From assembly GCA_964057225.1 (NCBI GenBank), contig OZ059898.1, forward strand, positions 21,328,001 through 21,392,000: 64,000 bases of DNA, in the 5' to 3' direction. This DNA comes from Auanema rhodensis (Eukaryota > Animalia > Nematoda). Shown piece by piece: positions 6,001-54,999 of this stretch; within the stretch, counting starts at the first letter, position 1; every line of letters starts with the position of its first letter. The position numbers and the translations under genes were made by a program. Under the pieces are notes generated by a model. The model did not search any database, was not told the origin of the DNA, and saw only the letters and a program-made list of their open reading frames with translations.

Positions 6001-6999
6001 ATGGTAACCATGACTTTGAAATTTACGTGAACTTTAATTTATGCTAATTAAATGTACACGTGATGTGCACTTGGTATGTAACTCGCTTCACGTGAAAGAT
6101 AAAGAGATGCGGTTTTCAAAATTAGATTCCCCATGTCCATATTAGTCTAAAAACAAATTTTTATTGATATTGGTGCATGGTAACCATGACTTTGAAATTT
6201 ACGTGAACTTTAATTTATGCTAATTGAATGTACACGTGATGTGCACTTGGTATGTAACTCGCTTCACGTGAAAGATAAAGAGATGCGGTTTTCAAAATTA
6301 GATTCCCCATGTCCATATTAGTCTAAAAACAAATTTTTATCGATATTGGTTCATGGTAACCATGACTTTGAAATTTACGTGAACTTTAATTTATGCTAAT
6401 TAAATGTACACGTGATGTGCACTTGGTATGTAACTCGCTTCACGTGAAAGATAAAGAGATACGGTTTTCAAAATTAGATTCCCCAAGTCCATATTAGTCT
6501 AAAAACAAATTTTTATTGATATTGGTTCATGGTAACCATGACTTTGAAATTTACGTGAACTTTAATTTATGCTAATTAAATGTACACGTGATGTGCACTT
6601 GGTATGTAACCCGCTTCACGTGAAAGATAAAGAGATGCGGTTTTCAAAATTAGATTCCTCATGACCATATTAGTCTAAAAACAAATTTTTATTGATATTG
6701 GTTCATGGTAACCATGACTTTGAAATTTACGTGAACTTTGATTTATGCTAATTAAATGTACACGTGATGTGCACTTGGTATGTAACCCGCTTCACGTGAA
6801 AGATAAAGAGATGCGGTTTTCAAAATTAGATTCCCCATGTCCATATTAGTCTAAAAACAAATTTTTATTGATATTGGTGCATGGTAACCATGACTTTGAA
6901 ATTTACGTGAACTTTAATTTATGCTAATTAAATGTACACGTGATGTGCACTTGGTATGTAACTCGCTTCACGTGAAAGATAAAGAGATGCGGTTTTCAA

Positions 7000-27200: not shown

Positions 27201-27959
27201 ACTCGCTTCACGTGAAAGATAAAGAGATGCGGTTTTCAAAATTAGATTCCCCATGTCCATATTAGTCTAAAAACAAATTATTATCGATATTGGTTCATGG
27301 TAACCATGACTTTGAAATTTACGTGAACTTTAATTTATGCTAATTAAATGTACACGTGATGTGCACTTGGTATGTAACTCGCTTCACGTGAAAGATAAAG
27401 AGATGCGGTTTTCACAATTAGATTCCCCATGTCCATATTAGTCTAAAATCAAATTTTTATTGATATTGGTTCATGGTAACCATGACTTTGAAATTTACGT
27501 GAACTTTAATTCATGCTAATTAAATGTACACGTGATGTGCACTTGGTATGTAACTCGCTTCACGTGGAAGATAAAGAGATGCGGTTTTCAAAATTAGATT
27601 CCTCATGTCCATATTAGTCTAAAAACAAATTTTTATTGATATTGGTGCATGGTAACCATGACTTTGAAATTTACGTGAACTTTAATTTATGCTAATTAAA
27701 TGTACACGTGATGTGCACTTGGTATGTAACTCGCTTCACGTGAAAGATAAAGAGATGCAGTTTTCAAAATTAGATTCCTCATGTCCATATTAGTCTAAAA
27801 ACAAATTTTTATTGATATTGGTTCATGGTAACCATGACTTTGAAATTTACGTGAACTTTAATTTATGCTAATTAAATGTACACGTGATGTGCACTTGGTA
27901 TGTAACTCGCTTCACGTGAAAGATAAAGAGATGCGGTTTTCAAAATTAGATTCCCCATG

Positions 27960-30900
27960 TCCATATTAGTCTAAAAACAAATTTTTATTGATATTGGTGC
28001 ATGGTAACCATGACTTTGAAATTTACGTGAACTTTAATTTATGCTAATTAAATGTACACGTGATGTGCACTTGGTATGTAACTCGCTTCACGTGAAAGAT
28101 AAAGAGATGCGGTTTTCAAAATTAGATTCCCCATGTCCATATTAGTCTAAAAACAAATTATTATCGATATTGGTTCATGGTAACCATGACTTTGAAATTT
28201 ACGTGAACTTTAATTTATGCTAATTAAATGTACACGTGATGTGCACTTGGTATGTAACTCGCTTCACGTGAAAGATAAAGAGATGAGGTTTTCAAAATTA
28301 GATTCCTCATGTCCATATTAGTCTAAAAACAAATTTTTATTGATATTGGTTCATGGTAACCATGACTTTGAAATTTACGTGAACTTTAATTTATGCTAAT
28401 TAAATGTACACGTGATGTGAACTTGGTATGTAACCCGCTTCACGTGAAAGATAAAGAGATGCGGTTTTCAAAATTAGATTCCCCATGTCCATGTTAGTCT
28501 AAAAACAAATTTTTATTGATATTGGTGCATGGTAACCATGACTTTGAAATTTACGTGAACTTTAATTTATGCTAATTAAATGTACACGTGATGTGCACTT
28601 GGTATGTAACTCGCTTCACGTGAAAGATAAAGAGATGCGGTTTTCAAAATTAGATTCCCCAAGTCCATATTAGTCTAATAACAAATTTTTATTGATATTG
28701 GTTCATGATAACCATGACTTTGAAATTTACGTGAACTTTAATTTATGCTAATTAAATGTACACGTGATGTGCACTTGGTATGTAACTCGCTTCACGTGAA
28801 AGATAAAGAGATGCGGTTTTCAAAATTAGATTCCCCATGTCCATATTAGTCTAAAAACAAATTATTATCGATATTGGTTCATGGTAACCATGACTTTGAA
28901 ATTTACGTGAACTTTAATTTATGCTAATTAAATGTACACGTGATGTGCACTTGGTATGTAACTCGCTTCACGTGAAAGATAAAGAGATGCGGTTTTCACA
29001 ATTAGATTCCCCATGTCCATATTAGTCTAAAATCAAATTTTTATTGATATTGGTTCATGGTAACCATGACTTTGAAATTTACGTGAACTTTAATTCATGC
29101 TAATTAAATGTACACGTGATGTGCACTTGGTATGTAACTCGCTTCACGTGGAAGATAAAGAGATGCGGTTTTCAAAATTAGATTCCTCATGTCCATATTA
29201 GTCTAAAAACAAATTTTTATTGATATTGGTGCATGGTAACCATGACTTTGAAATTTACGTGAACTTTAATTTATGCTAATTAAATGTACACGTGATGTGC
29301 ACTTGGTATGTAACTCGCTTCACGTGAAAGATAAAGAGATGCAGTTTTCAAAATTAGATTCCTCATGTCCATATTAGTCTAAAAACAAATTTTTATTGAT
29401 ATTGGTTCATGGTAACCATGACTTTGAAATTTACGTGAACTTTAATTTATGCTAATTAAATGTACACGTGATGTGCACTTGGTATGTAACTCGCTTCACG
29501 TGAAAGATAAAGAGATGCGGTTTTCAAAATTAGATTCTTCATGTCCATATTAGTCTAAAAACAAATTTTTATTGATATTGGTGCATGGTAACCATGACTT
29601 TGAAATTTACGTGAACTTTAATTTATGCTAATTAAATGTACACGTGATGTGCACTTGGTATGTAACTCGCTTCACGTGAAAGATAAAGAGATGCGGTTTT
29701 CAAAATTAGATTCCCCATGTTCATATTAGTCTAAAAACAAATTATTATCGATATTGGTTCATGGTAACCATGACTTTGAAATTTACGTGAACTTTAATTT
29801 ATGCTAATTAAATGTACACGTGATGTGCACTTGGTATGTAACTCGCTTCACGTGAAAGATAAAGAGATGAGGTTTTCAAAATTAGATTCCTCATGTCCAT
29901 ATTAGTCTAAAAACAAATTTTTATTGATATTGGTTCATGGTAACCATGACTTTGAAATTTACGTGAACTTTAATTTATGCTAATTAAATGTACACGTGAT
30001 GTGAACTTGGTATGTAACCCGCTTCACGTGAAAGATAAAGAGATGCGGTTTTCAAAATTAGATTCCCCATGTCCATGTTAGTCTAAAAACAAATTTTTAT
30101 TGATATTGGTGCATGGTAACCATGACTTTGAAATTTACGTGAACTTTAATTTATGCTAATTAAATGTACACGTGATGTGCACTTGGTATGTAACTCGCTT
30201 CACGTGAAAGATAAAGAGATGCGGTTTTCAAAATTAGATTCCCCAAGTCCATATTAGTCTAAAAACAAATTTTTATTGATATTGGTTCATGATAACCATG
30301 ACTTTGAAATTTACGTGAACTTTAATTTATGCTAATTAAATGTACACGTGATGTGCACTTGGTATGTAACTCGCTTCACGTGAAAGATAAAGAGATGCGG
30401 GTTTCAAAATTAGATTCCCCATGTCCATATTAGTCTAAAAACAAATTTTTATTGATATTGGTTCATGGTAACCATGACTTTGAAATTTACGTGAACTTTA
30501 ATTTATGCTAATTAAATGTACACGTGATGTGCACTTGGTATGTAACTCGCTTCACGTGAAAGATAAAGAGATGCGGTTTTCAAAATTAGATTCCCCATGT
30601 CCATATTAGTCTAAAAACAAATTATTATCGATATTGGTTCATGGTAACCATGACTTTGAAATTTACGTGAACTTTAATTTATGCTAATTAAATGTACACG
30701 TGATGTGCACTTGGTATGTAACTCGCTTCACGTGAAAGATAAAGAGATGAGGTTTTCAAAATTAGATTCCTCATGTCCATATTAGTCTAAAAACAAATTT
30801 TTATTGATATTGGTTCATGGTAACCATGACTTTGAAATTTACGTGAACTTTAATTTATGCTAATTAAATGTACACGTGATGTGAACTTGGTATGTAACCC

Positions 30901-33090
30901 GCTTCACGTGAAAGATAAAGAGATGCGGTTTTCAAAATTAGATTCCCCATGTCCATGTTAGTCTAAAAACAAATTTTTATTGATATTGGTGCATGGTAAC
31001 CATGACTTTGAAATTTACGTGAACTTTAATTTATGCTAATTAAATGTACACGTGATGTGCACTTGGTATGTAACTCGCTTCACGTGAAAGATAAAGAGAT
31101 GCGGTTTTCAAAATTAGATTCCCCAAGTCCATATTAGTCTAATAACAAATTTTTATTGATATTGGTTCATGATAACCATGACTTTGAAATTTACGTGAAC
31201 TTTAATTTATGCTAATTAAATGTACACGTGATGTGCACTTGGTATGTAACTCGCTTCACGTGAAAGATAAAGAGATGCGGTTTTCAAAATTAGATTCCCC
31301 ATGTCCATATTAGTCTAAAAACAAATTATTATCGATATTGGTTCATGGTAACCATGACTTTGAAATTTACGTGAACTTTAATTTATGCTAATTAAATGTA
31401 CACGTGATGTGCACTTGGTATGTAACTCGCTTCACGTGAAAGATAAAGAGATGCGGTTTTCACAATTAGATTCCCCATGTCCATATTAGTCTAAAATCAA
31501 ATTTTTATTGATATTGGTTCATGGTAACCATGACTTTGAAATTTACGTGAACTTTAATTCATGCTAATTAAATGTACACGTGATGTGCACTTGGTATGTA
31601 ACTCGCTTCACGTGGAAGATAAAGAGATGCGGTTTTCAAAATTAGATTCCTCATGTCGATATTAGTCTAAAAACAAATTTTTATTGATATTGGTGCATGG
31701 TAACCATGACTTTGAAATTTACGTGAACTTTAATTTATGCTAATTAAATGTACACGTGATGTGCACTTGGTATGTAACTCGCTTCACGTGAAAGATAAAG
31801 AGATGCAGTTTTCAAAATTAGATTCCTCATGTCCATATTAGTCTAAAAACAAATTTTTATTGATATTGGTTCATGGTAACCATGACTTTGAAATTTACGT
31901 GAACTTTAATTTATGCTAATTAAATGTACACGTGATGTGCACTTGGTATGTAACTCGCTTCACGTGAAAGATAAAGAGATGCGGTTTTCAAAATTAGATT
32001 CTTCATGTCCATATTAGTCTAAAAACAAATTTTTATTGATATTGGTGCATGGTAACCATGACTTTGAAATTTACGTGAACTTTAATTTATGCTAATTAAA
32101 TGTACACGTGATGTGCACTTGGTATGTAACTCGCTTCACGTGAAAGATAAAGAGATGCGGTTTTCAAAATTAGATTCCCCATGTTCATATTAGTCTAAAA
32201 ACAAATTATTATCGATATTGGTTCATGGTAACCATGACTTTGAAATTTACGTGAACTTTAATTTATGCTAATTAAATGTACACGTGATGTGCACTTGGTA
32301 TGTAACTCGCTTCACGTGAAAGATAAAGAGATGAGGTTTTCAAAATTAGATTCCTCATGTCCATATTAGTCTAAAAACAAATTTTTATTGATATTGGTTC
32401 ATGGTAACCATGACTTTGAAATTTACGTGAACTTTAATTTATGCTAATTAAATGTACACGTGATGTGAACTTGGTATGTAACCCGCTTCACGTGAAAGAT
32501 AAAGAGATGCGGTTTTCAAAATTAGATTCCCCATGTCCATGTTAGTCTAAAAACAAATTTTTATTGATATTGGTGCATGGTAACCATGACTTTGAAATTT
32601 ACGTGAACTTTAATTTATGCTAATTAAATGTACACGTGATGTGCACTTGGTATGTAACTCGCTTCACGTGAAAGATAAAGAGATGCGGTTTTCAAAATTA
32701 GATTCCCCAAGTCCATATTAGTCTAAAAACAAATTTTTATTGATATTGGTTCATGATAACCATGACTTTGAAATTTACGTGAACTTTAATTTATGCTAAT
32801 TAAATGTACACGTGATGTGCACTTGGTATGTAACTCGCTTCACGTGAAAGATAAAGAGATGCGGGTTTCAAAATTAGATTCCCCATGTCCATATTAGTCT
32901 AAAAACAAATTTTTATTGATATTGGTTCATGGTAACCATGACTTTGAAATTTACGTGAACTTTAATTTATGCTAATTAAATGTACACGTGATGTGCACTT
33001 GGTATGTAACTCGCTTCACGTGAAAGATAAAGAGATGCGGTTTTCAAAATTAGATTCCCCATGTCCATATTAGTCTAAAAACAAATTTTT
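27960..33090 (+). repeat. 14-monomer (2464 bp) tandem duplication with 9+5 substructure
   Basis: tctaata at ~28675 and ~31139, cttcatg at ~29537 and ~32001, gcgggtttc at ~30397 and ~32861. The gtgaacttgg/ccatgtt monomer occurs at ~28417, 30001, 30881 and 32465. Edges approximate. Confidence 0.85.
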
Positions 33091-33959
33091 ATTGATATTG
33101 GTGCATGGTAACCATGACTTTGAAATTTACGTGAACTTTAATTTATGCTAATTAAATGTACACGTGATGTGCACTTGGTATGTAACTCGCTTCACGTGAA
33201 AGATAAAGAGATGCGGTTTTCAAAATTAGATTCCCCATGTCCATATTAGTCTAAAAACAAATTTTTATTGATATTGGTGCATGGTAACCATGACTTTGAA
33301 ATTTACGTGAACTTTAATTTATGCTAATTAAATGTACACGTGATGTGCACTTGGTATGTAACTCGCTTCACGTGAAAGATAAAGAGATGCGGTTTTCAAA
33401 ATTAGATTCCCCATGTCCATATTAGTCTAAAAACAAATTTTTATTGATATTGGTTCATGGTAACCATGACTTTGAAATTTACGTGAACTTTAATTTATGC
33501 TAATTAAATGTACACGTGATGTGCACTTGGTATGTAACTCGCTTCACGTGAAAGATAAAGAGATGCGGTTTTCAAAATTAGATTCCCCATGTCCATATTA
33601 GTCTAAAAACAAATTTTTATTGATATTGGTGCATGGTAACCATGACTTTGAAATTTACGTGAACTTTAACTTATGCTAATTAAATGTACACGTGATGTGC
33701 ACTTGGTATGTAACCCGCTTCACGTGAAAGATAAAGAGATGCGGTTTTCAAAATTAGATTCCTCATGTCCATATTAGTCTAAAAACAAATTTTAATTGAT
33801 ATTGGTTCATGGTAACCATGACTTTGAAATTTACGTGAACTTTAATTTATGCTAATTAAATGTACACGTGATGTGCACTTGGTATGTAACTCGCTTCACT
33901 TGAAAGATAAAGAGATGCGGTTTTCAAAATTAGATTCCTCATGTCCATATTAGTCTAAA

Positions 33960-35644
33960 AACAAATTTTTATTGATATTGGTGCATGGTAACCATGACTT
34001 TGAAATTTACGTGAAATTTAATTTATGCTAATTAAATGTACACGTGATGTGCACTTGGTATGTAACTCGCTTCACGTGAAAGATAAAGAGATGCGGTTTT
34101 CAAAATTAGATTCCCCATGTCCATATTAGTATAAAAACGAATTTTCATTGATATTGGTGCATGGTAACCATGACTTTGAAATTTACGTGAACTTTGATTT
34201 ATGCTAATTAAATGTACACGTGATGTGCACTTGGTATGTAACTCGCTTCACGTGAAAGATAAAGAGATGCGGTTTTCAAAATTAGATTCCCCATGTCCAT
34301 ATTAGTCTAAAAACAAATTTTTATTGATATTGGTGCATGGTAACCATGACTTTGAAATTTACGTGAACTTTAATTTATGCTAATTAAATGTACACGTGAT
34401 GTGCACTTGGTATGTAACTCGCTTCACGTGAAAGATAAAGAGATGCGGTTTTCAAAATTAGATTCCCCATGTCCATATTAGTCTAAAAACAAATTTTTAT
34501 TGATATTGGTTCATGGTAACCATGACTTTGAAATTTACGTGAACTTTAATTTATGCTAATTAAATGTACACGTGATGTGCACTTGGTATGTAACTCGCTT
34601 CACGTGAAAGATAAAGAGATGCGGTTTTCAAAATTAGATTCCCCATGTCCATATTAGTCTAAAAACAAATTTTTATTGATATTGGTGCATGGTAACCATG
34701 ACTTTGAAATTTACGTGAAATTTAATTTATGCTAATTAAATGTACACGTGATGTGCACTTGGTATGTAACTCGCTTCACGTGAAAGATAAAGAGATGCGG
34801 TTTTCAAAATTAGATTCCCCATGTCCATATTAGTATAAAAACGAATTTTCATTGATATTGGTGCATGGTAACCATGACTTTGAAATTTACGTGAACTTTG
34901 ATTTATGCTAATTAAATGTACACGTGATGTGCACTTGGTATGTAACTCGCTTCACGTGAAAGATAAAGAGATGCGGTTTTCAAAATTAGATTCCCCATGT
35001 CCATATTAGTCTAAAAACAAATTTTTATTGATATTGGTGCATGGTAACCATGACTTTGAAATTTACGTGAACTTTAATTTATGCTAATTAAATGTACACG
35101 TGATGTGCACTTGGTATGTAACTCGCTTCACGTGAAAGATAAAGAGATGCGGTTTTCAAAATTAGATTCCCCATGTCCATATTAGTCTAAAAACAAATTT
35201 TTATTGATATTGGTTCATGGTAACCATGACTTTGAAATTTACGTGAACTTTAATTTATGCTAATTAAATGTACACGTGATGTGCACTTGGTATGTAACTC
35301 GCTTCACGTGAAAGATAAAGAGATGCGGTTTTCAAAATTAGATTCCCCATGTCCATATTAGTCTAAAAACAAATTTTTATTGATATTGGTGCATGGTAAC
35401 CATGACTTTGAAATTTACGTGAAATTTAATTTATGCTAATTAAATGTACACGTGATGTGCACTTGGTATGTAACTCGCTTCACGTGAAAGATAAAGAGAT
35501 GCGGTTTTCAAAATTAGATTCCCCATGTCCATATTAGTATAAAAACGAATTTTCATTGATATTGGTGCATGGTAACCATGACTTTGAAATTTACGTGAAC
35601 TTTGATTTATGCTAATTAAATGTACACGTGATGTGCACTTGGTA
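33960..35644 (+). repeat. 4-monomer (704 bp) higher-order repeat, truncated by the inversion
   Basis: The gtataaaaacgaattttc variant has its diagnostic A at 34131, 34835 and 35539, each preceded by gtgaaattt and followed by tttgat. Confidence 0.88.
35642..35644. other. Left inversion breakpoint, 3-bp microhomology GTA
   Basis: Forward ...gtgcacttg[gta]tgtaac is joined to reverse ...ttcac[gta]aatttcaaag, giving the observed gtgcacttg-gta-aatttcaaag. Confidence 0.95.
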
Positions 35645-35799
35645 AATTTCAAAGTCATGGTTACCATGAACCAATATCAATAAAAATTTGTTTTTAGACT
35701 AATATGGACATGGGGAATCTAATTTTGAAAACCGCATCTCTTTATCTTTCACGTGAAGCGGGTTACATACCAAGTGCACATCACGTGTACATTTAATTA

Positions 35800-35802
35800 G
35801 CA
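35800..35802. other. Out-of-register junction inside the inversion (44 bp missing modulo 176), 3-bp microhomology GCA
   Basis: Observed atttaatta[gca]ccaatatc. The normal reverse monomer has 44 more bases (taaattaaagttcacgtaaatttcaaagtcatggttaccatgca) between these points. Confidence 0.93.
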
Positions 35803-38800
35803 CCAATATCAATAAAAATTTGTTTTTAGACTAATATGGACATGGGAAATCTAATTTTGAAAACCGCATCTCTTTATCTTTCACGTGAAGCGAGTTACAT
35901 ACCAAGTGCACATCACGTGTACATTTAATTAGCATAAATTAAAGTTCACGTAAATTTCAAAGTCATGGTTACCATGAACCAATATCAATAAAAATTTGTT
36001 TTTAGACTAATATGGACATGAGGAATCTAATTTCGAAAACCGCATCTCTTTATCTTTCACGTGAAGCGAGTTACATACCAAGTGCACATCACGTGTACAT
36101 TTAATTAGCATAAATTAAAGTTCACGTAAATTTCAAAGTCATGGTTACCATGAACCAATATCGATAAAAATTTGTTTTTAGACTAATATGGACATAGGGA
36201 ATCTAATTTTGAAAACCGCATCTCTTTATCTTTCACGTGAAGCGAGTTACATACCAAGTGCACATCACGTGTACATTTAATTAGCATAAATTAAAGTTCA
36301 CGTAAATTTCAAAGTCATGGTTACCATGCACCAATATCAATAAAAATTTGTTTTTAGACTAATATGGACATGGGGAATCTAATTTTGAAAACCGCATCTC
36401 TTTATCTTTCACGTGAAGCGAGTTACATACCAAGTGCACATCACGTGTACATTTAATTAGCATAAATTAAAGTTCACGTAAATTTCAAAGTCATGGTTAC
36501 CATGAACCAATATCGATAAAAATTTGTTTTTAGACTAATATGGACATGGGGAATCTAATTTTGAAAACCCCATCTCTTTATCTTTCACGTGAAGCGAGTT
36601 ACATACCAAGTGCACATCACGTGTACATTCAATTAGCATAAATTAAAGTTCACGTAAATTTCAAAGTCATGGTTACCATGAACCAATATCGATAAAAATT
36701 TGTTTTTAGACTAATATGGACATGGGGAATCTAATTTTGAAAACCCCATCTCTTTATCTTTCACGTGAAGCGAGTTACATACCAAGTGCACATCACGTGT
36801 ACATTTAATTAGCATAAATTAAAGTTCACGTAAATTTCAAAGTCATGGTTACCATGAACCAATATCGATAAAAATTTGTTTTTAGACTAATATGGACATA
36901 GGGAATCTAATTTTGAAAACCGCATCTCTTTATCTTTCACGTGAAGCGAGTTACATACCAAGTGCACATCACGTGTACATTTAATTAGCATAAATTAAAG
37001 TTCACGTAAATTTCAAAGTCATGGTTACCATGCACCAATATCAATAAAAATTTGTTTTTAGACTAATATGGACATGGGGAATCTAATTTTGAAAACCGCA
37101 TCTCTTTATCTTTCACGTGAAGCGAGTTACATACCAAGTGCACATCACGTGTACATTTAATTAGCATAAATTAAAGTTCACGTAAATTTCAAAGTCATGG
37201 TTACCATGAACCAATATCGATAAAAATTTGTTTTTAGACTAATATGGACATAGGGAATCTAATTTTGAAAACCGCATCTCTTTATCTTTCACGTGAAGCG
37301 AGTTACATACCAAGTGCACATCACGTGTACATTTAATTAGCATAAATTAAAGTTCACGTAAATTTCAAAGTCATGGTTACCATGCACCAATATCAATAAA
37401 AATTTGTTTTTAGACTAATATGGACATGGGGAATCTAATTTTGAAAACCGCATCTCTTTATCTTTCACGTGAAGCGAGTTACATACCAAGTGCACATCAC
37501 GTGTACATTTAATTAGCATAAATTAAAGTTCACGTAAATTTCAAAGTCATGGTTACCATGAACCAATATCAATAAAAATTTGTTTTTAGACTAATATGGA
37601 CATGAGGAATCTAATTTCGAAAACCGCATCTCTTTATCTTTCACGTGAAGCGAGTTACATACCAAGTGCACATCACGTGTACATTTAATTAGCATAAATT
37701 AAAGTTCACGTAAATTTCAAAGTCATGGTTACCATGCACCAATATCAATAAAAATTTGTTTTTAGACTAATATGGACATGGGGAATCTAATTTTGAAAAC
37801 CGCATCTCTTTATCTTTCACGTGAAGCGGGTTACATACCAAGTGCACATCACGTGTACATTTAATTAGCATAAATCAAAGTTCACGTAAATTTCAAAGTC
37901 ATGGTTACCATGCACCAATATCAATAAAAATTTGTTTTTAGACTAATATGGACATGGGAAATCTAATTTTGAAAACCGCATCTCTTTATCTTTCACGTGA
38001 AGCGAGTTACATACCAAGTGCACATCACGTGTACATTTAATTAGCATAAATTAAAGTTCACGTAAATTTCAAAGTCATGGTTACCATGAACCAATATCAA
38101 TAAAAATTTGTTTTTAGACTAATATGGACTTGGGGAATCTAATTTTGGAAACCGCATCTCTTTATCTTTCACGTGAAGCGAGTTACATACCAAGTGCACA
38201 TCACGTGTACATTTAATTAGCATAAATTAAAGTTCACGTAAATTTCAAAGTCATGGTTACCATGAACCAATATCAATAAAAATTTGTTTTTAGACTAATA
38301 TGAACATCGGGAATCTAATTTTGAAAACCGCATCTCTTTATCTTTCACGTGAAGCGAGTTACATACCAAGTGCACATCATGTGTACATTTAATTAGCATA
38401 AATTAAAGTTCACGTAAATTTCAAAGTCATGGTTACCATGCACCAATATCAATAAAAATTTGTTTTTAGACTAATATGGACATGGGGAATCTAATTTTGA
38501 AAACCGCATCTCTTTATCTTTCACGTGAAGCGAGTTACATACCAAGTGCACATCACGTGTACATTTGATTAGCATAAATTAAAGTTCACGTAAATTTCAA
38601 AGTCATATTTACCATGCACCAATATCAATAAAAATTTGTTTTTAGACTAATATGGACATGGGGAATCTAATTTTGAAAACCGCATCTCTTTATCTTTCAC
38701 GTGAAGCGAGTTACATACCAAGTGCACATCACGTGTACATTTGATTAGCATAAATTAAAGTTCACGTAAATTTCAAAGTCATGGTTACCATGAACCAATA

Positions 38801-40970
38801 TCAATAAAAATTTGTTTTTAGACTAATATGAACATCGGGAATCTAATTTTGATAACCGCATCTCTTTATCTTTCACGTGAAGCGAGTTACATACCAAGTG
38901 CACATCATGTGTACATTTAATTAGCATAAATTAAAGTTCACGTAAATTTCAAAGTCATGGTTACCATGCACCAATATCAATAAAAATTTGTTTTTAGACT
39001 AATTTGGACATGGGGAATCTAATTTTGAAAACCGCATCTCTTTATCTTTCACGTGAAGCGAGTTACATACCAAGTGCACATCATGTGTACATTTAATTAG
39101 CATAAATTAAAGTTCACGTAAATTTCAAAGTCATGGTTACCATGCACCAATATCAATAAAAATTTGTTTTTAGACTAATTTGGACATGGGGAATCTAATT
39201 TTGAAAACCGCATCTCTTTATCTTTCACGTGAAGCGAGTTACATACCAAGTGCACATCATGTGTACATTTAATTAGCATAAATTAAAGTTCACGTAAATT
39301 TCAAAGTCATGGTTACCATGCACCAATATCAATAAAAATTTGTTTTTAGACTAATATGGACATGGGGAATCTAATTTTGAAAACCGCATCTCTTTATCTT
39401 TCACGTGAAGCGAGTTACATACCAAGTGCACATCACGTGTACATTTGATTAGCATAAATTAAAGTTCACGTAAATTTCAAAGTCATGGTTACCATGAACC
39501 AATATCAATAAAAATTTGTTTTTAGACTAATATGAACATCGGGAATCTAATTTTGAAAACCGCATCTCTTTATCTTTCACGTGAAGCGAGTTACATACCA
39601 AGTGCACATCATGTGTACATTTAATTAGCATAAATTAAAGTTCACGTAAATTTCAAAGTCATGGTTACCATGCACCAATATCAATAAAAATTTGTTTTTA
39701 GACTAATATGGACATGGGGAATCTAATTTTGAAAACCGCATCTCTTTATCTTTCACGTGAAGCGAGTTACATACCAAGTGCACATCACGTGTACATTTGA
39801 TTAGCATAAATTAAAGTTCACGTAAATTTCAAAGTCATGGTTACCATGAACCAATATCAATAAAAATTTGTTTTTAGACTAATATGAACATCGGGAATCT
39901 AATTTTGAAAACCGCATCTCTTTATCTTTCACGTGAAGCGAGTTACATACCAAGTGCACATCATGTGTACATTTAATTAGCATAAATTAAAGTTCACGTA
40001 AATTTCAAAGTCATGGTTACCATGCACCAATATCAATAAAAATTTGTTTTTAGACTAATATGGACATGGGGAATCTAATTTTGAAAACCGCATCTCTTTA
40101 TCTTTCACGTGAAGCGAGTTACATACCAAGTGCACATCACGTGAACATTTAATTAGCTTAAATTAAAGTTCACGTAAATTTCAAAGTCATGGTTACCATG
40201 CACCAATATCAATAAAAATTTGTTTTTAGACTAATATGGACATGGGGAATCTAATTTTGAAAACCGCATCTCTTTATCTTTCACGTGAAGCGAGTTACAT
40301 ACCAAGTGCACATCACGTGTACATTTAATTAGCATAAATTAAAGTTCACGTAAATTTCAAAGTCATGGTTACCATGAACCAATATCAATAAAAATTTGTT
40401 TTTAGACTAATATGGACATGGGGAATCTAATTTTGAAAACCGCATCTCTTTATCTTTCACGTGAAGCGAGTTACATACCAAGTGCACATCACGTGTACAT
40501 TTAATTAGCATAAATTAAAGTTCACGTAAATTTCAAAGTCATGGTTACCATGCACCAATATCAATAAAAATTTGTTTTTAGACTAATATGGACATGGGGA
40601 ATCTAATTTTGAAAACCGCATCTCTTTATCTTTCACGTGAAGCGAGTTACATACCAAGTGCACATCACGTGTACATTTAATTAGCATAAATTAAAGTTCA
40701 CGTAAATTTCAAAGTCATGGTTACCATGCACCAATATCAATAAAAATTTGTTTTTAGACTAATATGGACATGGGGAATCTAATTTTGAAAACCGCATCTC
40801 TTTATCTTTCACGTGAAGCGAGTTACATACCAAGTGCACATCACGTGTACATTTAATTAGCATAAATTAAAGTTCACGTAAATTTCAAAGTCATGGTTAC
40901 CATGAACCAATATCAATAAAAATTTGTTTTTAGACTAATATGGACATGGGGAATCTAATTTTGAAACCCG

Positions 40971-40972
40971 CA
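40971..40972. other. Right inversion breakpoint, 2-bp microhomology CA
   Basis: Reverse ...ttgaaacccg[ca]tctc is joined to forward ...aaaaa[ca]aatttttattg. Confidence 0.95.
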
Positions 40973-43900
40973 AATTTTTATTGATATTGGTGCATGGTAA
41001 CCATGACTTTGAAATTTACGTGAACTTTAATTTATGCTAATTAAATGTACACGTGATGTGCACTTGGTATGTAACTCGCTTCACGTGAAAGATAAAGAGA
41101 TGCGGTTTTCAAAATTAGATTCCCCATGTCCATATTAGTCTAAAAACAAATTTTTATTGATATTGGTGCATGGTAACCATGACTTTGAAATTTACGTGAA
41201 CTTTAATTTATGCTAATTAAATGTACACGTGATGTGCACTTGGTATGTAACTCGCTTCACGTGAAAGATAAAGAGATGCGGTTTTCAAAATTAGATTCCC
41301 CATGTCCATATTAGTCTAAAAACAAATTTTTATTGATATTGGTTCATGGTAACCATGACTTTGAAATTTACGTGAACTTTAATTTATGCTAATTAAATGT
41401 ACACGTGATGTGCACTTGGTATGTAACTCGCTTCACGTGAAAGATAAAGAGATGCGGTTTTCAAAATTAGATTCCCCATGTCCATATTAGTCTAAAAACA
41501 AATTTTTATTGATATTGGTGCATGGTAACCATGACTTTGAAATTTACGTGAACTTTAATTTAAGCTAATTAAATGTTCACGTGATGTGCACTTGGTATGT
41601 AACTCGCTTCACGTGAAAGATAAAGAGATGCGGTTTTCAAAATTAGATTCCCCATGTCCATATTAGTCTAAAAACAAATTTTTATTGATATTGGTGCATG
41701 GTAACCATGACTTTGAAATTTACGTGAACTTTAATTTATGCTAATTAAATGTACACATGATGTGCACTTGGTATGTAACTCGCTTCACGTGAAAGATAAA
41801 GAGATGCGGTTTTCAAAATTAGATTCCCGATGTTCATATTAGTCTAAAAACAAATTTTTATTGATATTGGTTCATGGTAACCATGACTTTGAAATTTACG
41901 TGAACTTTAATTTATGCTAATCAAATGTACACGTGATGTGCACTTGGTATGTAACTCGCTTCACGTGAAAGATAAAGAGATGCGGTTTTCAAAATTAGAT
42001 TCCCCATGTCCATATTAGTCTAAAAACAAATTTTTATTGATATTGGTGCATGGTAACCATGACTTTGAAATTTACGTGAACTTTAATTTATGCTAATTAA
42101 ATGTACACATGATGTGCACTTGGTATGTAACTCGCTTCACGTGAAAGATAAAGAGATGCGGTTTTCAAAATTAGATTCCCGATGTTCATATTAGTCTAAA
42201 AACAAATTTTTATTGATATTGGTGCATGGTAACCATGACTTTGAAATTTACGTGAACTTCAATTTATGCTAATTAAATGTACACATGATGTGCACTTGGT
42301 ATGTAACTCGCTTCACGTGAAAGATAAAGAGATGCGGTTATCAAAATTAGATTCCCGATGTTCATATTAGTCTAAAAACAAATTTTTATTGATATTGGTT
42401 CATGGTAACCATGACTTTGAAATTTACGTGAACTTTAATTTATGCTAATCAAATGTACACGTGATGTGCACTTGGTATGTAACTCGCTTCACGTGAAAGA
42501 TAAAGAGATGCGGTTTTCAAAATTAGATTCCCCATGTCCATATTAGTCTAAAAACAAATTTTTATTGATATTGGTGCATGGTAAATATGACTTTGAAATT
42601 TACGTGAACTTTAATTTATGCTAATCAAATGTACACGTGATGTGCACTTGGTATGTAACTCGCTTCACGTGAAAGATAAAGAGATGCGGTTTTCAAAATT
42701 AGATTCCCCATGTCCATATTAGTCTAAAAACAAATTTTTATTGATATTGGTGCATGGTAACCATGACTTTGAAATTTACGTGAACTTTAATTTATGCTAA
42801 TTAAATGTACACATGATGTGCACTTGGTATGTAACTCGCTTCACGTGAAAGATAAAGAGATGCGGTTTTCAAAATTAGATTCCCGATGTTCATATTAGTC
42901 TAAAAACAAATTTTTATTGATATTGGTTCATGGTAACCATGACTTTGAAATTTACGTGAACTTTAATTTATGCTAATTAAATGTACACGTGATGTGCACT
43001 TGGTATGTAACTCGCTTCACGTGAAAGATAAAGAGATGCGGTTTCCAAAATTAGATTCCCCAAGTCCATATTAGTCTAAAAACAAATTTTTATTGATATT
43101 GGTTCATGGTAACCATGACTTTGAAATTTACGTGAACTTTAATTTATGCTAATTAAATGTACACGTGATGTGCACTTGGTATGTAACTCGCTTCACGTGA
43201 AAGATAAAGAGATGCGGTTTTCAAAATTAGATTTCCCATGTCCATATTAGTCTAAAAACAAATTTTTATTGATATTGGTGCATGGTAACCATGACTTTGA
43301 AATTTACGTGAACTTTGATTTATGCTAATTAAATGTACACGTGATGTGCACTTGGTATGTAACCCGCTTCACGTGAAAGATAAAGAGATGCGGTTTTCAA
43401 AATTAGATTCCCCATGTCCATATTAGTCTAAAAACAAATTTTTATTGATATTGGTGCATGGTAACCATGACTTTGAAATTTACGTGAACTTTAATTTATG
43501 CTAATTAAATGTACACGTGATGTGCACTTGGTATGTAACTCGCTTCACGTGAAAGATAAAGAGATGCGGTTTTCGAAATTAGATTCCTCATGTCCATATT
43601 AGTCTAAAAACAAATTTTTATTGATATTGGTTCATGGTAACCATGACTTTGAAATTTACGTGAACTTTAATTTATGCTAATTAAATGTACACGTGATGTG
43701 CACTTGGTATGTAACTCGCTTCACGTGAAAGATAAAGAGATGCGGTTTTCAAAATTAGATTCCCCATGTCCATATTAGTCTAAAAACAAATTTTTATTGA
43801 TATTGGTGCATGGTAACCATGACTTTGAAATTTACGTGAACTTTAATTTATGCTAATTAAATGTACACGTGATGTGCACTTGGTATGTAACTCGCTTCAC

Positions 43901-45498
43901 GTGAAAGATAAAGAGATGCGGTTTTCAAAATTAGATTCCCTATGTCCATATTAGTCTAAAAACAAATTTTTATCGATATTGGTTCATGGTAACCATGACT
44001 TTGAAATTTACGTGAACTTTAATTTATGCTAATTAAATGTACACGTGATGTGCACTTGGTATGTAACTCGCTTCACGTGAAAGATAAAGAGATGCGGTTT
44101 TCAAAATTAGATTCCCCATGTCCATATTAGTCTAAAAACAAATTTTTATTGATATTGGTGCATGGTAACCATGACTTTGAAATTTACGTGAACTTTAATT
44201 TATGCTAATTAAATGTACACGTGATGTGCACTTGGTATGTAACTCGCTTCACGTGAAAGATAAAGAGATGCGGTTTTCAAAATTAGATTCCCTATGTCCA
44301 TATTAGTCTAAAAACAAATTTTTATCGATATTGGTTCATGGTAACCATGACTTTGAAATTTACGTGAACTTTAATTTATGCTAATTAAATGTACACGTGA
44401 TGTGCACTTGGTATGTAACTCGCTTCACGTGAAAGATAAAGAGATGGGGTTTTCAAAATTAGATTCCCCATGTCCATATTAGTCTAAAAACAAATTTTTA
44501 TCGATATTGGTTCATGGTAACCATGACTTTGAAATTTACGTGAACTTTAATTTATGCTAATTGAATGTACACGTGATGTGCACTTGGTATGTAACTCGCT
44601 TCACGTGAAAGATAAAGAGATGGGGTTTTCAAAATTAGATTCCCCATGTCCATATTAGTCTAAAAACAAATTTTTATCGATATTGGTTCATGGTAACCAT
44701 GACTTTGAAATTTACGTGAACTTTAATTTATGCTAATTAAATGTACACGTGATGTGCACTTGGTATGTAACTCGCTTCACGTGAAAGATAAAGAGATGCG
44801 GTTTTCAAAATTAGATTCCCCATGTCCATATTAGTCTAAAAACAAATTTTTATTGATATTGGTGCATGGTAACCATGACTTTGAAATTTACGTGAACTTT
44901 AATTTATGCTAATTAAATGTACACGTGATGTGCACTTGGTATGTAACTCGCTTCACGTGAAAGATAAAGAGATGCGGTTTTCAAAATTAGATTCCCTATG
45001 TCCATATTAGTCTAAAAACAAATTTTTATCGATATTGGTTCATGGTAACCATGACTTTGAAATTTACGTGAACTTTAATTTATGCTAATTAAATGTACAC
45101 GTGATGTGCACTTGGTATGTAACTCGCTTCACGTGAAAGATAAAGAGATGCGGTTTTCGAAATTAGATTCCTCATGTCCATATTAGTCTAAAAACAAATT
45201 TTTATTGATATTGGTTCATGGTAACCATGACTTTGAAATTTACGTGAACTTTAATTTATGCTAATTAAATGTACACGTGATGTGCACTTGGTATGTAACT
45301 CGCTTCACGTGAAAGATAAAGAGATGCGGTTTTCAAAATTAGATTTCCCATGTCCATATTAGTCTAAAAACAAATTTTTATTGATATTGGTGCATGGTAA
45401 CCATGACTTTGAAATTTACGTGAACTTTAATTTATGCTAATCAAATGTACACGTGATGTGCACTTGGTATGTAACTCGCTTCACGTGAAAGATAAAGA

Positions 45499-45514
45499 GA
45501 TGTTTTAAAATTAG
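45499..45514 (+). other. 172-bp variant monomer (compound 3+1 bp deletion), copy 1
   Basis: gatgttttaaaattag instead of gatgcggttttcaaaattag. Confidence 0.93.
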
Positions 45515-46068
45515 ATTCCCCATGTCCATATTAGTCTAAAAACAAATTTTTATTGATATTGGTGCATGGTAAATATGACTTTGAAATTTACGTGAACTTT
45601 AATTTATGCTAATCAAATGTACACGTGATGTGCACTTGGTATGTAACTCGCTTCACGTGAAAGATAAAGAGATGCGGTTTTCAAAATTAGATTCCTCATG
45701 TCCATATTAGTCTAAAAACAAATTTTAATTGATATTGGTTCATGGTAACCATGACTTTGAAATTTACGTGAACTTTAATTTATGCTAATTAAATGTACAC
45801 GTGATGTGCACTTGGTATGTAACTCGCTTCACTTGAAAGATAAAGAGATGCGGTTTTCAAAATTAGATTTCCCATGTCCATATTAGTCTAAAAACAAATT
45901 TTTATTGATATTGGTTCATGGTAACCATGACTTTGAAATTTACGTGAACTTTGATTTATGCTAATTAAATGTACACGTGATGTGCACTTGGTATGTAACC
46001 CGCTTCACGTGAAAGATAAAGAGATGCGGTTTTCAAAATTAGATTCCCCATGTCCATATTAGTCTAAA

Positions 46069-46108
46069 AACAAATTTTTATTGATATTAACAAATTTTAA
46101 TTGATATT
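46069..46108 (+). other. +20-bp out-of-register junction (imperfect 20-bp tandem repeat)
   Basis: aacaaatttttattgatatt (46069-46088) is followed by aacaaattttaattgatatt (46089-46108). Confidence 0.93.
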
Positions 46109-49100
46109 GGTTCATGGTAACCATGACTTTGAAATTTACGTGAACTTTAATTTATGCTAATTAAATGTACACGTGATGTGCACTTGGTATGTAACTCGCT
46201 TCACTTGAAAGATAAAGAGATGCGGTTTTCAAAATTAGATTCCTCATGTCCATATTAGTCTAAAAACAAATTTTTATTGATATTGGTGCATGGTAACCAT
46301 GACTTTGAAATTTACGTGAAATTTAATTTATGCTAATTAAATGTACACGTGATGTGCACTTGGTATGTAACTCGCTTCACGTGAAAGATAAAGAGATGCG
46401 GTTTTCAAAATTAGATTCCCCATGTCCATATTAGTATAAAAACGAATTTTCATTGATATTGGTGCATGGTAACCATGACTTTGAAATTTACGTGAACTTT
46501 GATTTATGCTAATTAAATGTACACGTGATGTGCACTTGGTATGTAACTCGCTTCACGTGAAAGATAAAGAGATGCGGTTTTCAAAATTAGATTCCCCATG
46601 TCCATATTAGTCTAAAAACAAATTTTTATTGATATTGGTGCATGGTAACCATGACTTTGAAATTTACGTGAACTTTAATTTATGCTAATTAAATGTACAC
46701 GTGATGTGCACTTGGTATGTAACTCGCTTCACGTGAAAGATAAAGAGATGCGGTTTTCAAAATTAGATTCCTCATGTCCATATTAGTCTAAAAACAAATT
46801 TTTATTGATATTGGTGCATGGTAACCATGACTTTGAAATTTACGTGAACTTTGATTTATGCTAATTAAATGTACACGTGATGTGCACTTGGTATGTAACT
46901 CGCTTCACGTGAAAGATAAAGAGATGCGGTTTTCAAAATTAGATTCCCCATGTCCATATTAGTCTAAAAACAAATTTTTATTGATATTGGTGCATGGTAA
47001 CCATGACTTTGAAATTTACGTGAACTTTAATTTATGCTAATTAAATGTACACGTGATGTGCACTTGGTATGTAACTCGCTTCACGTGAAAGATAAAGAGA
47101 TGCGGTTTTCACAATTAGATTCCCCATGTCCATATTAGTCTAAAAACAAATTTTAATTGATATTGGTTCATGGTAACCATGACTTTGAAATTTACGTGAA
47201 CTTTAATTTATGCTAATTAAATGTACACGTGATGTGCACTTGGTATGTAACTCGCTTCACTTGAAAGATAAAGAGATGCGGTTTTCAAAATTAGATTCCC
47301 CATGTCCATATTAGTCTAAAAACAAATTTTTATCGATATTGGTTCATGGTAACCATGACTTTGAAATTTACGTGAACTTTAATTTATGCTAATTAAATGT
47401 ACACGTGATGTGCACTTGGTATGTAAATCGCTTCACGTGAAAGATAAAGAGATGCGGTTTTCAAAATTAGATTCCCCATGTCCATATTAGTCTAAAAACA
47501 AATTTTTATTGATATTGGTTCATGGTAACCATGACTTTGAAATTTACGTGAACTTTGATTTATGCTAATTAAATGTACACGTGATGTGCACTTGGTATGT
47601 AACTCGCTTCACGTGAAAGATAAAGAGATGCGGTTTTCAAAATTAGATTTCCCATGTCCATATTAGTCTGAAATCAAACTTTTATTGATATTGGTTCATG
47701 GTAACCATGAATTTGAAATTTACGTGAACTTTAATTTATGCTAATTAAATGTACACGTGATGTGCACTTGGTATGTAACTCGCTTCACGTGGAAGATAAA
47801 GAGATGCGGTTTTCAAAATTAGATTCCTCATGTCCATATTAGTCTAAAAACAAATTTTTATTGATATTGGTGCATGGTAACCATGACTTTGAAATTTACG
47901 TGAACTTTAATTTATGCTAATTAAATGTACACGTGATGTGCACTTGGTATGTAACTCGCTTCACGTGAAAGATAAAGAGATGCGGTTTTCAAAATTAGAT
48001 TCCCCATGTCCATATTAGTCTAAAAACAAATTTTTATTGATATTGGTGCATGGTAACCATGACTTTGAAATTTACGTGAACTTTAATTTATGCTAATTAA
48101 ATGTACACGTGATGTGCACTTGGTATGTAACTCGCTTCACGTGAAAGATAAAGAGATGCGGTTTTCAAAATTAGATTCCCCATGTCCATATTAGTCTAAA
48201 AACAAATTATTATCGATATTGGTTCATGGTAACCATGACTTTGAAATTTACGTGAACTTTAATTTATGCTAATTAAATGTACACGTGATGTGCACTTGGT
48301 ATGTAACTCGCTTCACGTGAAAGATAAAGAGATGCGGTTTTCACAATTAGATTCCCCATGTCCATATTAGTCTAAAATCAAATTTTTATTGATATTGGTT
48401 CATGGTAACCATGACTTTGAAATTTACGTGAACTTTAATTCATGCTAATTAAATGTACACGTGATGTTCACTTGGTATGTAACTCGCTTCACGTGGAAGA
48501 TAAAGAGATGCGGTTTTCAAAATTAGATTCCTCATGTCCATATTAGTCTAAAAACAAATTTTTATTGATATTGGTGCATGGTAACCATGACTTTGAAATT
48601 TACGTGAACTTTAATTTATGCTAATTAAATGTACACGTGATGTGCACTTGGTATGTAACTCGCTTCACGTGAAAGATAAAGAGATGCAGTTTTCAAAATT
48701 AGATTCCTCATGTCCATATTAGTCTAAAAACAAATTTTTATTGATATTGGTTCATGGTAACCATGACTTTGAAATTTACGTGAACTTTAATTTATGCTAA
48801 TTAAATGTACACGTGATGTGCACTTGGTATGTAACTCGCTTCACGTGAAAGATAAAGAGATGCGGTTTTCAAAATTAGATTCCCCATGTCCATATTAGTC
48901 TAAAAACAAATTTTTATTGATATTGGTGCATGGTAACCATGACTTTGAAATTTACGTGAACTTTAATTTATGCTAATTAAATGTACACGTGATGTGCACT
49001 TGGTATGTAACTCGCTTCACGTGAAAGATAAAGAGATGCGGTTTTCAAAATTAGATTCCCCATGTCCATATTAGTCTAAAAACAAATTATTATCGATATT

Positions 49101-52100
49101 GGTTCATGGTAACCATGACTTTGAAATTTACGTGAACTTTAATTTATGCTAATTAAATGTACACGTGATGTGCACTTGGTATGTAACTCGCTTCACGTGA
49201 AAGACAAAGAGATGCGGTTTTCAAAATTAGATTCCCCATGTCCATATTAGTCTAAAAACAAATTTTTATTGATATTGGTGCATGGTAACCATGACTTTGA
49301 AATTTACGTGAACTTTAATTTATGCTAATTAAATGTACACGTGATGTGCACTTGGTATGTAACTCGCTTCACGTGAAAGATAAAGAGATGAGGTTTTCAA
49401 AATTAGATTCCTCATGTCCATATTAGTCTAAAAACAAATTTTTATTGATATTGGTTCATGGTAACCATGACTTTGAAATTTACGTGAACTTTAATTTATG
49501 CTAATTAAATGTACACGTGATGTGAACTTGGTATGTAACCCGCTTCACGTGAAAGATAAAGAGATGCGGTTTTCAAAATTAGATTCCCCATGTCCATGTT
49601 AGTCTAAAAACAAATTTTTATTGATATTGGTGCATGGTAACCATGACTTTGAAATTTACGTGAACTTTAATTTATGCTAATTAAATGTACACGTGATGTG
49701 CACTTGGTATGTAACTCGCTTCACGTGAAAGATAAAGAGATGCGGTTTTCAAAATTAGATTCCCCAAATCCATATTAGTCTAAAAACAAATTTTTATTGA
49801 TATTGGTTCATGATAACCATGACTTTGAAATTTACGTGAACTTTAATTTATGCTAATTAAATGTACACGTGATGTGCACTTGGTATGTAACTCGCTTCAC
49901 GTGAAAGATAAAGAGATGCGGGTTTCAAAATTAGATTCCCCATGTCCATATTAGTCTAAAAACAAATTTTTATTGATATTGGTTCATGGTAACCATGACT
50001 TTGAAATTTACGTGAACTTTAATTTATGCTAATTAAATGTACACGTGATGTGCACTTGGTATGTAACTCGCTTCACGTGAAAGATAAAGAGATGCGGTTT
50101 TCAAAATTAGATTCCCCATGTCCATATTAGTCTAAAAACAAATTTTTATTGATATTGGTGCATGGTAACCATGACTTTGAAATTTACGTGAACTTTAATT
50201 TATGCTAATTAAATGTACACGTGATGTGCACTTGGTATGTAACTCGCTTCACGTGAAAGATAAAGAGATGCGGTTTTCAAAATTAGATTCCCCATGTCCA
50301 TATTAGTCTAAAAACAAATTTTTATTGATATTGGTGCATGGTAACCATGACTTTGAAATTTACGTGAACTTTAATTTATGCTAATTAAATGTACACGTGA
50401 TGTGCACTTGGTATGTAACTCGCTTCACGTGAAAGATAAAGAGATGCGGTTTTCAAAATTAGATTCCCCATGTCCATATTAGTCTAAAAACAAATTTTTA
50501 TTGATATTGGTTCATGGTAACCATGACTTTGAAATTTACGTGAACTTTAATTTATGCTAATTAAATGTACACGTGATGTGCACTTGGTATGTAACTCGCT
50601 TCACGTGAAAGATAAAGAGATGCGGTTTTCAAAATTAGATTCCCCATGTCCATATTAGTCTAAAAACAAATTTTTATTGATATTGGTGCATGGTAACCAT
50701 GACTTTGAAATTTACGTGAACTTTAATTTAAGCTAATTAAATGTTCACGTGATGTGCACTTGGTATGTAACTCGCTTCACGTGAAAGATAAAGAGATGCG
50801 GTTTTCAAAATTAGATTCCCCATGTCCATATTAGTCTAAAAACAAATTTTTATTGATATTGGTGCATGGTAACCATGACTTTGAAATTTACGTGAACTTT
50901 AATTTATGCTAATTAAATGTACACATGATGTGCACTTGGTATGTAACTCGCTTCACGTGAAAGATAAAGAGATGCGGTTTTCAAAATTAGATTCCCGATG
51001 TTCATATTAGTCTAAAAACAAATTTTTATTGATATTGGTTCATGGTAACCATGACTTTGAAATTTACGTGAACTTTAATTTATGCTAATCAAATGTACAC
51101 GTGATGTGCACTTGGTATGTAACTCGCTTCACGTGAAAGATAAAGAGATGCGGTTTTCAAAATTAGATTCCCCATGTCCATATTAGTCTAAAAACAAATT
51201 TTTATTGATATTGGTGCATGGTAACCATGACTTTGAAATTTACGTGAACTTTAATTTATGCTAATTAAATGTACACATGATGTGCACTTGGTATGTAACT
51301 CGCTTCACGTGAAAGATAAAGAGATGCGGTTTTCAAAATTAGATTCCCCATGTCCAAATTAGTCTAAAAACAAATTTTTATTGATATTGGTGCATGGTAA
51401 CCATGACTTTGAAATTTACGTGAACTTTAATTTATGCTAATTAAATGTACACATGATGTGCACTTGGTATGTAACTCGCTTCACGTGAAAGATAAAGAGA
51501 TGCGGTTTTCAAAATTAGATTCCCCATGTCCAAATTAGTCTAAAAACAAATTTTTATTGATATTGGTGCATGGTAACCATGACTTTGAAATTTACGTGAA
51601 CTTTAATTTATGCTAATTAAATGTACACATGATGTGCACTTGGTATGTAACTCGCTTCACGTGAAAGATAAAGAGATGCGGTTATCAAAATTAGATTCCC
51701 GATGTTCATATTAGTCTAAAAACAAATTTTTATTGATATTGGTTCATGGTAACCATGACTTTGAAATTTACGTGAACTTTAATTTATGCTAATCAAATGT
51801 ACACGTGATGTGCACTTGGTATGTAACTCGCTTCACGTGAAAGATAAAGAGATGCGGTTTTCAAAATTAGATTCCCCATGTCCATATTAGTCTAAAAACA
51901 AATTTTTATTGATATTGGTGCATGGTAAATATGACTTTGAAATTTACGTGAACTTTAATTTATGCTAATCAAATGTACACGTGATGTGCACTTGGTATGT
52001 AACTCGCTTCACGTGAAAGATAAAGAGATGCGGTTTTCAAAATTAGATTCCCCATGTCCATATTAGTCTAAAAACAAATTTTTATTGATATTGGTGCATG

Positions 52101-54842: not shown

Positions 54843-54858
54843 GATGTTTTAAAATTAG
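54843..54858 (+). other. 172-bp variant monomer (same deletion), copy 2
   Basis: Identical deletion 9344 bp downstream (53x176+16), with identical flanking variants (aatcaaat, gtaaatatg). Confidence 0.93.
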
Positions 54859-54999
54859 ATTCCCCATGTCCATATTAGTCTAAAAACAAATTTTTATTGA
54901 TATTGGTGCATGGTAAATATGACTTTGAAATTTACGTGAACTTTAATTTATGCTAATCAAATGTACACGTGATGTGCACTTGGTATGTAACTCGCTTCA

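Follow-up and report, generated by a model that had tools for sequence, protein, structure and literature searches.

A complex inverted duplication with four non-homologous junctions in a satellite array of the nematode Auanema rhodense

The stretch of DNA analyzed here, a window of 64 kb at C6:21,328,001-21,392,000 in the nematode Auanema rhodense, is a single tandem array of a 176-bp monomer with a GC content of 32%, as found both with Tandem Repeats Finder (TRF) and by scanning with the monomer consensus. Within about 10.5 kb of this array there are four junctions at which the strand or the register of the monomers changes, and the DNA between them is the subject of this report. The window lies ~250 kb inside the end of a 21.6-Mb contig in the 180.9-Mb HiFi/hifiasm assembly of the A. 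rhodense inbred line APS4 (10.64898/2026.08.27.747507). The AT-1, or "autosomal terminal", repeat of this species is eliminated from somatic cells from the 12-cell stage, and the SFE elimination motif has just 15 strong matches in the eliminated DNA (10.64898/2026.08.27.747507). Because the published 28-nt fluorescence in situ hybridization probe for AT-1 occurs 327 times in the window, we conclude that the satellite is AT-1, which is germline-restricted and eliminated from the soma. The near-terminal position of the window on its contig fits the name of the repeat.

The anatomy of the complex, the relationships among its copies, the microhomologies and the uniqueness of the junctions were read directly from one assembly, representing a single haplotype. 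To map phase and orientation, each position was compared with the consensus in all 176 phases and in both orientations. To relate the copies to each other, monomers were coded as variants relative to the consensus, and the resulting strings of monomers were aligned. Genome-wide k-mer counts refer to the whole assembly (180,911,798 bp in 112 contigs, 181 Mb below), and a wider census of register and strand covered 264 kb of array around the window, a region that contains no N.

An earlier note on this DNA had placed four junctions here, and all four were recovered at the same positions, with the same three microhomologies and the same blunt join, when TRF was combined with the scan for phase and orientation (Table 1). 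Between the first junction, J1, and the last, J4, there are a short inverted filler and two extra copies of a cassette that therefore occurs three times in the window: copy A is inverted, copy B is forward, and copy C is the resident forward copy downstream. The register does not change between window coordinates -10,730 and 35,644 (~46 kb), in agreement with the earlier statement that the 35.6 kb preceding the complex have no register change, and farther upstream we found shifts of 1 bp only. The array keeps one orientation, the complex excepted, for ~200 kb that begin 100 kb upstream of the window and end at +111.8 kb, and the forward array continues after J4 to position 64000. Both GC skew and AT skew change sign over 36-40 kb. 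At J2, taking the 14G variant of the source monomer makes the GCA match exact. A count of junction k-mers against the rest of the assembly, which the earlier note had proposed, gave a single occurrence for each of the 30-mers across J1, J2, J3 and J4, and elsewhere in the assembly there is no unrearranged allele, no second copy of any junction and no alternative haplotig.

Table 1. Features of the complex and its flanks in the 64-kb window (positions are those of the window)
Feature	Position	Strand	Details
Upstream AT-1-type array, constant register	1-35644	+	ends at phase 91, in a rare local monomer type (1C,14G,51G)
J1, strand switch from + to -	35642-35644		GTA, 3-bp microhomology
Inverted filler, 158 bp	35645-35802	-	phases 38 to 0, then 175 to 57; variant 98C
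J2, join within the inverted orientation	35800-35802		GCA, 3-bp microhomology; 44 bp of phase skipped
Copy A, inverted	35803-40970	-	C coordinates 49919-54734 plus 352 bp (two more monomers)
Center of the A/B near-palindrome, 220 bp	40751-40970	-	in A but absent from B; resembles the loop or spacer of a fold-back
J3, strand switch from - to + (fold-back junction)	40971-40972		CA, 2-bp microhomology
Copy B, forward	40971-46088	+	C coordinates 50139-55432
J4, blunt join	46088/46089		phase 10 to 167, a 20-bp step back
Array between B and cassette C, 3.8 kb	46089-49918	+	opens with the private monomer types of the upstream flank
Cassette C, resident copy	49919-55432	+	includes a 172-bp variant monomer at 54722-54893

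The three copies of the cassette are almost identical. A aligns with C over 4,816 bp with 0 mismatches and one gap of 352 bp (two monomers), A aligns with B over 4,420 bp with 1 mismatch and one gap of 528 bp, and B aligns with C over 5,118 bp with 4 mismatches and one gap of 176 bp. A core of 2,992 bp is identical across all three, and its next best match in the 264 kb has 30 mismatches. A cassette-diagnostic 40-mer has exactly 3 occurrences in the 181-Mb assembly. Relative to A, B has 3 monomers fewer and one private substitution, 50C, in the monomer at 42210-42385. By similarity the copies are ordered C-A-B: A is one indel away from C, B is one indel away from A, and B is at least 2 events away from C. 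The middle of the cassette is self-similar and reads XYXYZZX'Y in A, XYZZX'Y in C and XYXX'Y in B, where X is a monomer with 14G, 75A, 147G and 152T, Y has 64C, Z has 14G, 75A and 155A, and X' is X plus 130A. A holds the union of the variants in this middle part.

Numbered by the monomers of the cassette, A extends from phase 12-14 of monomer 315 backward to phase 125 of monomer 287, an end fixed by the rare variant 128G; B extends from phase 169 of monomer 288 to phase 10 of monomer 319. Together the two form the arms of a near-palindrome around a single-copy center of 220 bp. Along the window, the order of the copies is inverted A, direct B, spacer and direct C, with 3.8 kb from B to the start of C and a spacer of 3.4 kb to the part of C that A also contains. 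C is in its original context, because its right-hand neighbor relations also occur in older paralogs, which have its adjacency of monomers 318 and 319 in common with it. The rearrangement amounts to a copy gain of 10.4 kb. The 0 differences over 4.8 kb bear out the earlier note's claim that the inverted block duplicates a cassette present elsewhere, a claim that understated the case, as three copies exist. The same note had argued that the complex is not a simple flip, and the analysis supports this.

Private monomer types are common to the two flanks of the complex. A 38-mer specific to the monomers that directly precede J1 has 5 occurrences genome-wide, all of them in the window, with 3 just left of J1 and 1 at 342 bp to the right of J4. 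Because both flanks carry these private types, the 10.4 kb from J1 to J4 are an insertion into one local sub-array, and the template for the insert lay a few kb away. Copy A as a self-copy of the upstream flank, made by a fold-back at J1, was considered and rejected, as the haplotypes do not fit. For the 158-bp filler, the window has one exact match (at 18538) and 21 matches with one mismatch, including one at the right end of the cassette (55303), and ~6% of array positions match it equally well. At phase 14 the filler has T, in contrast to the G of cassette monomer 319 and of both its older paralogs, so that 14G is ancestral there. Cassette monomers 318-319 would be an attractive source of the filler but conflict with it at phase 14, and the matches are too many to decide among them.

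Two features that could be mistaken for further breakpoints, or for a simpler origin of one, were also examined. Register shifts of -4 at ~45503 and ~54848 reflect the same 172-bp variant monomer, present in B (at 45378-45549) and in C. J4 appears in the TRF output as a 20-bp slippage, but the 20-bp copies differ at phase 1, and the second has the 1A of a monomer type with 1A and 107T. Because of this difference, and because the homology between B and C ends there, stopping within the 92 bp that contain J4, we conclude that J4 joins two different monomers and is not a local slip.

The clustering of the four joins within 10.5 kb is real, because there is only one other such switch in the remaining ~253 kb of the census. 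That single other strand switch or large phase jump in the 264 kb is found at window coordinate +111,842 (C6:21,439,841/2), and all other register changes are recurring monomer variants of 172, 175 or 169 bp. At C6:21,439,841/2, where the join has 1 bp of microhomology or none, the array switches from + to - and then keeps the inverted orientation over no less than 52 kb. The arms of this join are not haplotype-matched (at best 60 mismatches in 4 kb), so that a young fold-back is ruled out.

The microhomologies at the four junctions are 3, 3, 2 and 0 bp and sum to 8 bp; with all possible junctions of the monomer as the null, the probability of a sum of at least 8 is 0.04. The monomer itself contains short palindromes at phases 38-47, 72-77, 100-109 and 15-27, namely TTCACGTGAA, CACGTG, an ACGT core and CATGGT-A-ACCATG. 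These palindromes offered as much as 10 bp of inverted microhomology, of which the strand-switch joins used none. As for ACGT and CACGTG sites at the junctions, the one case is an ACGT next to the inverted side of J1, no more than chance would give.

Judging from the sequence, we give about an even chance to the reading that the complex is a very recent germline rearrangement, made in one multi-switch repair or replication episode that included a fold-back and had a blunt end-join as its last step. We infer the single episode, the direction of synthesis and the enzymology from several relationships. A single multi-switch episode is favored because all four junctions fall exactly at the ends of the extra copies, because a mere 158 bp separate J1 from J2 in an array that otherwise has about one such join per 250 kb, and because the copies are equally young, with 0-1 substitutions both between A and B and between A and C. 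The clustering of the joins, the summed microhomology of 8 bp and the fold-back features of J3 also count in its favor. Synthesis from left to right is favored because the similarity order C-A-B fits it.

In such an episode, a broken or stalled 3' end at 35644 would have been extended by low-fidelity synthesis that repeatedly re-primed. The end would first have primed on GTA on the opposite strand, where 158 nt would have been copied, and the resulting spacing of J1 and J2 resembles the short templated filler found between switches. Re-priming on GCA, on the opposite strand of the downstream cassette, would then have led to the copying of ~5.2 kb backwards, giving A. A turn on CA, 220 bp in from the tip and made either by fold-back or by a strand switch, would have been followed by ~5.1 kb of copying forwards, giving B. 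Blunt ligation to the other side of the gap, 3.8 kb upstream of C and 3.4 kb upstream of the part of C that A also contains, would have closed the complex; J4 looks like an end-join. The whole-monomer indels between the copies may have arisen as in-register slips within the same synthesis, or through unequal exchange at a later time where the cassette is self-similar.

Several observations weigh against a single episode of this kind. Being blunt, J4 cannot have primed synthesis. B contains the stretch from monomer 315 phase 13 to monomer 319 phase 10, which is missing from A, and B is therefore no plain self-copy of the final A. The source of the filler is ambiguous, with its one exact and 21 one-mismatch matches. 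The three structural differences and one substitution among the copies possibly point to time and further events, and the 0-1 substitutions, which correspond to an age of roughly 10^5 generations or less with a C. elegans-like mutation rate, do not force a single event. The earlier note had proposed one event. The positions of the junctions at the copy ends and the closeness of J1 and J2 speak for that proposal, and the indels of 2-3 monomers together with the one substitution point either to imprecise copying or to further events afterwards.

These same differences are also an argument for a stepwise history. In this account, a non-homologous direct duplication first produced J4 and B, a fold-back inverted duplication with loss of DNA later produced J3 and J1, and J2 arose afterwards by a deletion of the 572-bp type, followed by ordinary unequal exchanges. 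Three independent structural changes and one substitution separate the copies, so several events did happen in a short time, and many young in-register duplications without any mismatch make up the patchwork of the surrounding array. Large palindromes are moreover unstable and attract secondary deletions. We nevertheless consider a stepwise history unlikely. Non-register junctions are rare in this array, with one other in ~253 kb, and it is improbable that four joins of independent origin would all coincide with copy boundaries in a span of 10.5 kb, with only 158 bp between two of them. The three copies are equally young, with 0-1 substitutions. In addition, the inverted arm reaches phase 38 beyond the end of B without the 20-bp step of J4; because it does not have this step, it was not copied from B after J4 existed.

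The near-palindrome formed by A and B could also have been captured as a dimer, which we regard as rather unlikely. Here a cassette fragment of ~5.4 kb would have formed a hairpin at its left end, by folding back at CA around a loop of 220 nt in the manner of hairpin-capped intermediates or those of origin-dependent inverted-repeat amplification (ODIRA), been replicated into a linear inverted dimer and been end-joined into a break 3.4 kb upstream. J1 and J4 would be the insertion joins, and J2 and the 158-bp piece would represent a rearranged or nibbled end of one arm. The arms do cover almost the same part of the cassette: 220 bp separate the inner ends, and the outer ends, at monomer 315 phase 12 for A and monomer 319 phase 10 for B, are ~0.7 kb apart, or only 28 bp apart if the filler is monomer 318 phase 57 to monomer 319 phase 38 (at 55303). 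A blunt J4 and a 3-bp J1 are what end-joining gives, and hairpin-capped inverted intermediates are documented in yeast (PMC10766183). However, that assignment of the filler needs an extra change, as the filler has T at phase 14 while monomer 319 and the paralogs have G, and the ~6% of array positions that fit the filler equally well give it no preference. J2 would be needed as a separate deletion only 158 bp from J1, and canonical ODIRA involves integration by homologous recombination and a direct-inverted-direct order, neither of which is seen here.

Very unlikely, finally, is an artefact of the library or assembly, that is, a chimeric or fold-back HiFi molecule or a mis-join by hifiasm: fold-back chimeras with short loops and microhomology are known in long reads and every junction is single in the assembly, but such a chimera has one junction with perfectly matching flanks whereas here there are four non-homologous joins, the number of monomers differs among the three copies as it would not in in-vitro copies of one locus, overlap-based mis-joins fall in homology and not at 0-3 bp, and the site is well inside its contig with no N nearby. 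On the side of an artefact, read coverage is lower over repeat-rich germline-restricted regions (10.64898/2026.08.27.747507).

Outside the complex, the commonest mode of change in the array by far is in-register unequal exchange, of which we noted dozens of events. Young in-register segmental duplications, with 0-1 mismatch over 1-2.5 kb, are numerous at window positions 1-10,600 and 27,000-32,400; examples are monomers 0-8, which equal 46-54, monomers 39-45, which equal 53-59, and monomers 158-168, which equal 172-182. The segment at 32,385-34,320 (monomers 176-196) is an older paralog of two pieces within 46,098-50,673 joined in the other order (in the order of the paralog, monomers 276-291 and then 266-270), with a divergence of ~1 difference per one to two monomers. 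The array can be described as a patchwork of nested duplications of differing ages. Monomers are ~97.8% alike at every monomer distance, so unrelated stretches differ by ~2.2%, and a global higher-order repeat was ruled out, the autocorrelation being flat at ~97.8% over shifts of 1-149 monomers. Locally, there are sub-arrays that resemble higher-order repeats, at C6:21,248,650-21,266,350 and C6:21,405,059-21,414,204, where a 172-bp (-4) or 175-bp (-1) variant monomer appears every 2-11 monomers. The spacing in these runs is often 7 or 10 monomers for the 172-bp variant and 9 or 10 for the 175-bp variant. A 169-bp (-7) variant monomer recurs farther right, in the inverted array.

In-register unequal exchange is the usual explanation for the evolution of satellite arrays, and the acquisition of inverted blocks is rarely visible, either because the junctions are old or because the arrays are poorly assembled. 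With 0-1 substitutions in ~5 kb per copy, the source, the copies and the joins can be read base by base here, and they show repair with joins of 0-3 bp where 176-bp homology lay everywhere. That non-homologous fold-back and template-switch copying may be a recurrent and characteristic source of change and of strand switches in the germline-restricted satellites of this DNA-eliminating nematode is a distinctly doubtful extension, and the frequency of such events is judged on 264 kb of array only. A possible reason for such a tendency is that breaks or collapsed forks in multi-megabase arrays could be handled by an error-prone, microhomology-primed pathway despite the abundant homology, and this locus would in that case be a nucleotide-resolved, essentially unmutated example of a satellite gaining an inverted block. 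If the complex were confirmed in reads and similar cases were found repeatedly in the genome, they would supply a concrete mutational mechanism for strand switches in satellites and would also bear on DNA repair in the germline-only chromatin of a DNA-eliminating nematode. As a single case of a known class of rearrangement it carries moderate weight, as an unusually legible event.

Among the known classes of rearrangement, ODIRA and its hairpin-capped intermediates (Martin et al. 2024, PMC10766183) resemble the complex in that one segment forms an inverted dimer whose junction has a very short inverted repeat and a small loop. ODIRA would be expected to leave two fold-back junctions, of which there is a single one here, and the dimer is not integrated at its source by homologous recombination. 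No second fold-back at a short interrupted inverted repeat was found, as J1 joins an unrelated flank and the inverted copy is not the middle one.

The earlier note had also likened the complex to rearrangements of the duplication-inverted triplication-duplication (DUP-TRP/INV-DUP) type, and this comparison does not hold. Such rearrangements (Carvalho et al.; Grochowski et al. 2024, PMC11293582) likewise have three copies of a segment, one of them inverted, and junctions in cis, one of which forms by microhomology or non-homologous end joining. Their order is direct-inverted-direct, in contrast to inverted-direct-spacer-direct here, and they have two junctions and not four. At the junctions described here there are no low-copy repeats paired in inverted orientation, and no pre-existing inverted repeat mediated any of them.

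Fold-back inverted duplications (Hermetz et al. 2014, PMC3907307) are closer with respect to J3, which has a single-copy spacer of 220 bp and 2 bp of inverted microhomology. Published fold-back junctions have single-copy spacers of 766 bp-70 kb and at least 2 bp of inverted microhomology (PMC3907307), so the spacer here is shorter than those reported; the complex also differs in being interstitial and in having arms of 5 kb. None of the terminal deletion, translocation, ring chromosome, dicentric or telomere healing is seen at this site, where forward array with common private monomers lies on both sides.

The best reading of the complex appears to be a rearrangement of the type described for fork stalling and template switching and microhomology-mediated break-induced replication (FoSTeS/MMBIR; Hastings et al. 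2009, PMC2621351). The homogeneous tandem array and the one blunt join set it apart from that class, and we only infer a replicative origin. The earlier note had seen the hallmarks of FoSTeS/MMBIR here. The complex has several breakpoints in cis (four), switches of orientation and a copy gain (10.4 kb) as in that class, and three of its joins have 2-3 bp of microhomology, J4 being blunt. The short filler that separates J1 from J2 is array sequence and may be a templated insertion of the kind known from that class, and the templates lay a few kb away (PMC2621351). Taken with the resemblance of J3 to a fold-back junction, this suggests a FoSTeS/MMBIR-type complex rearrangement with a fold-back step, which is a known class.

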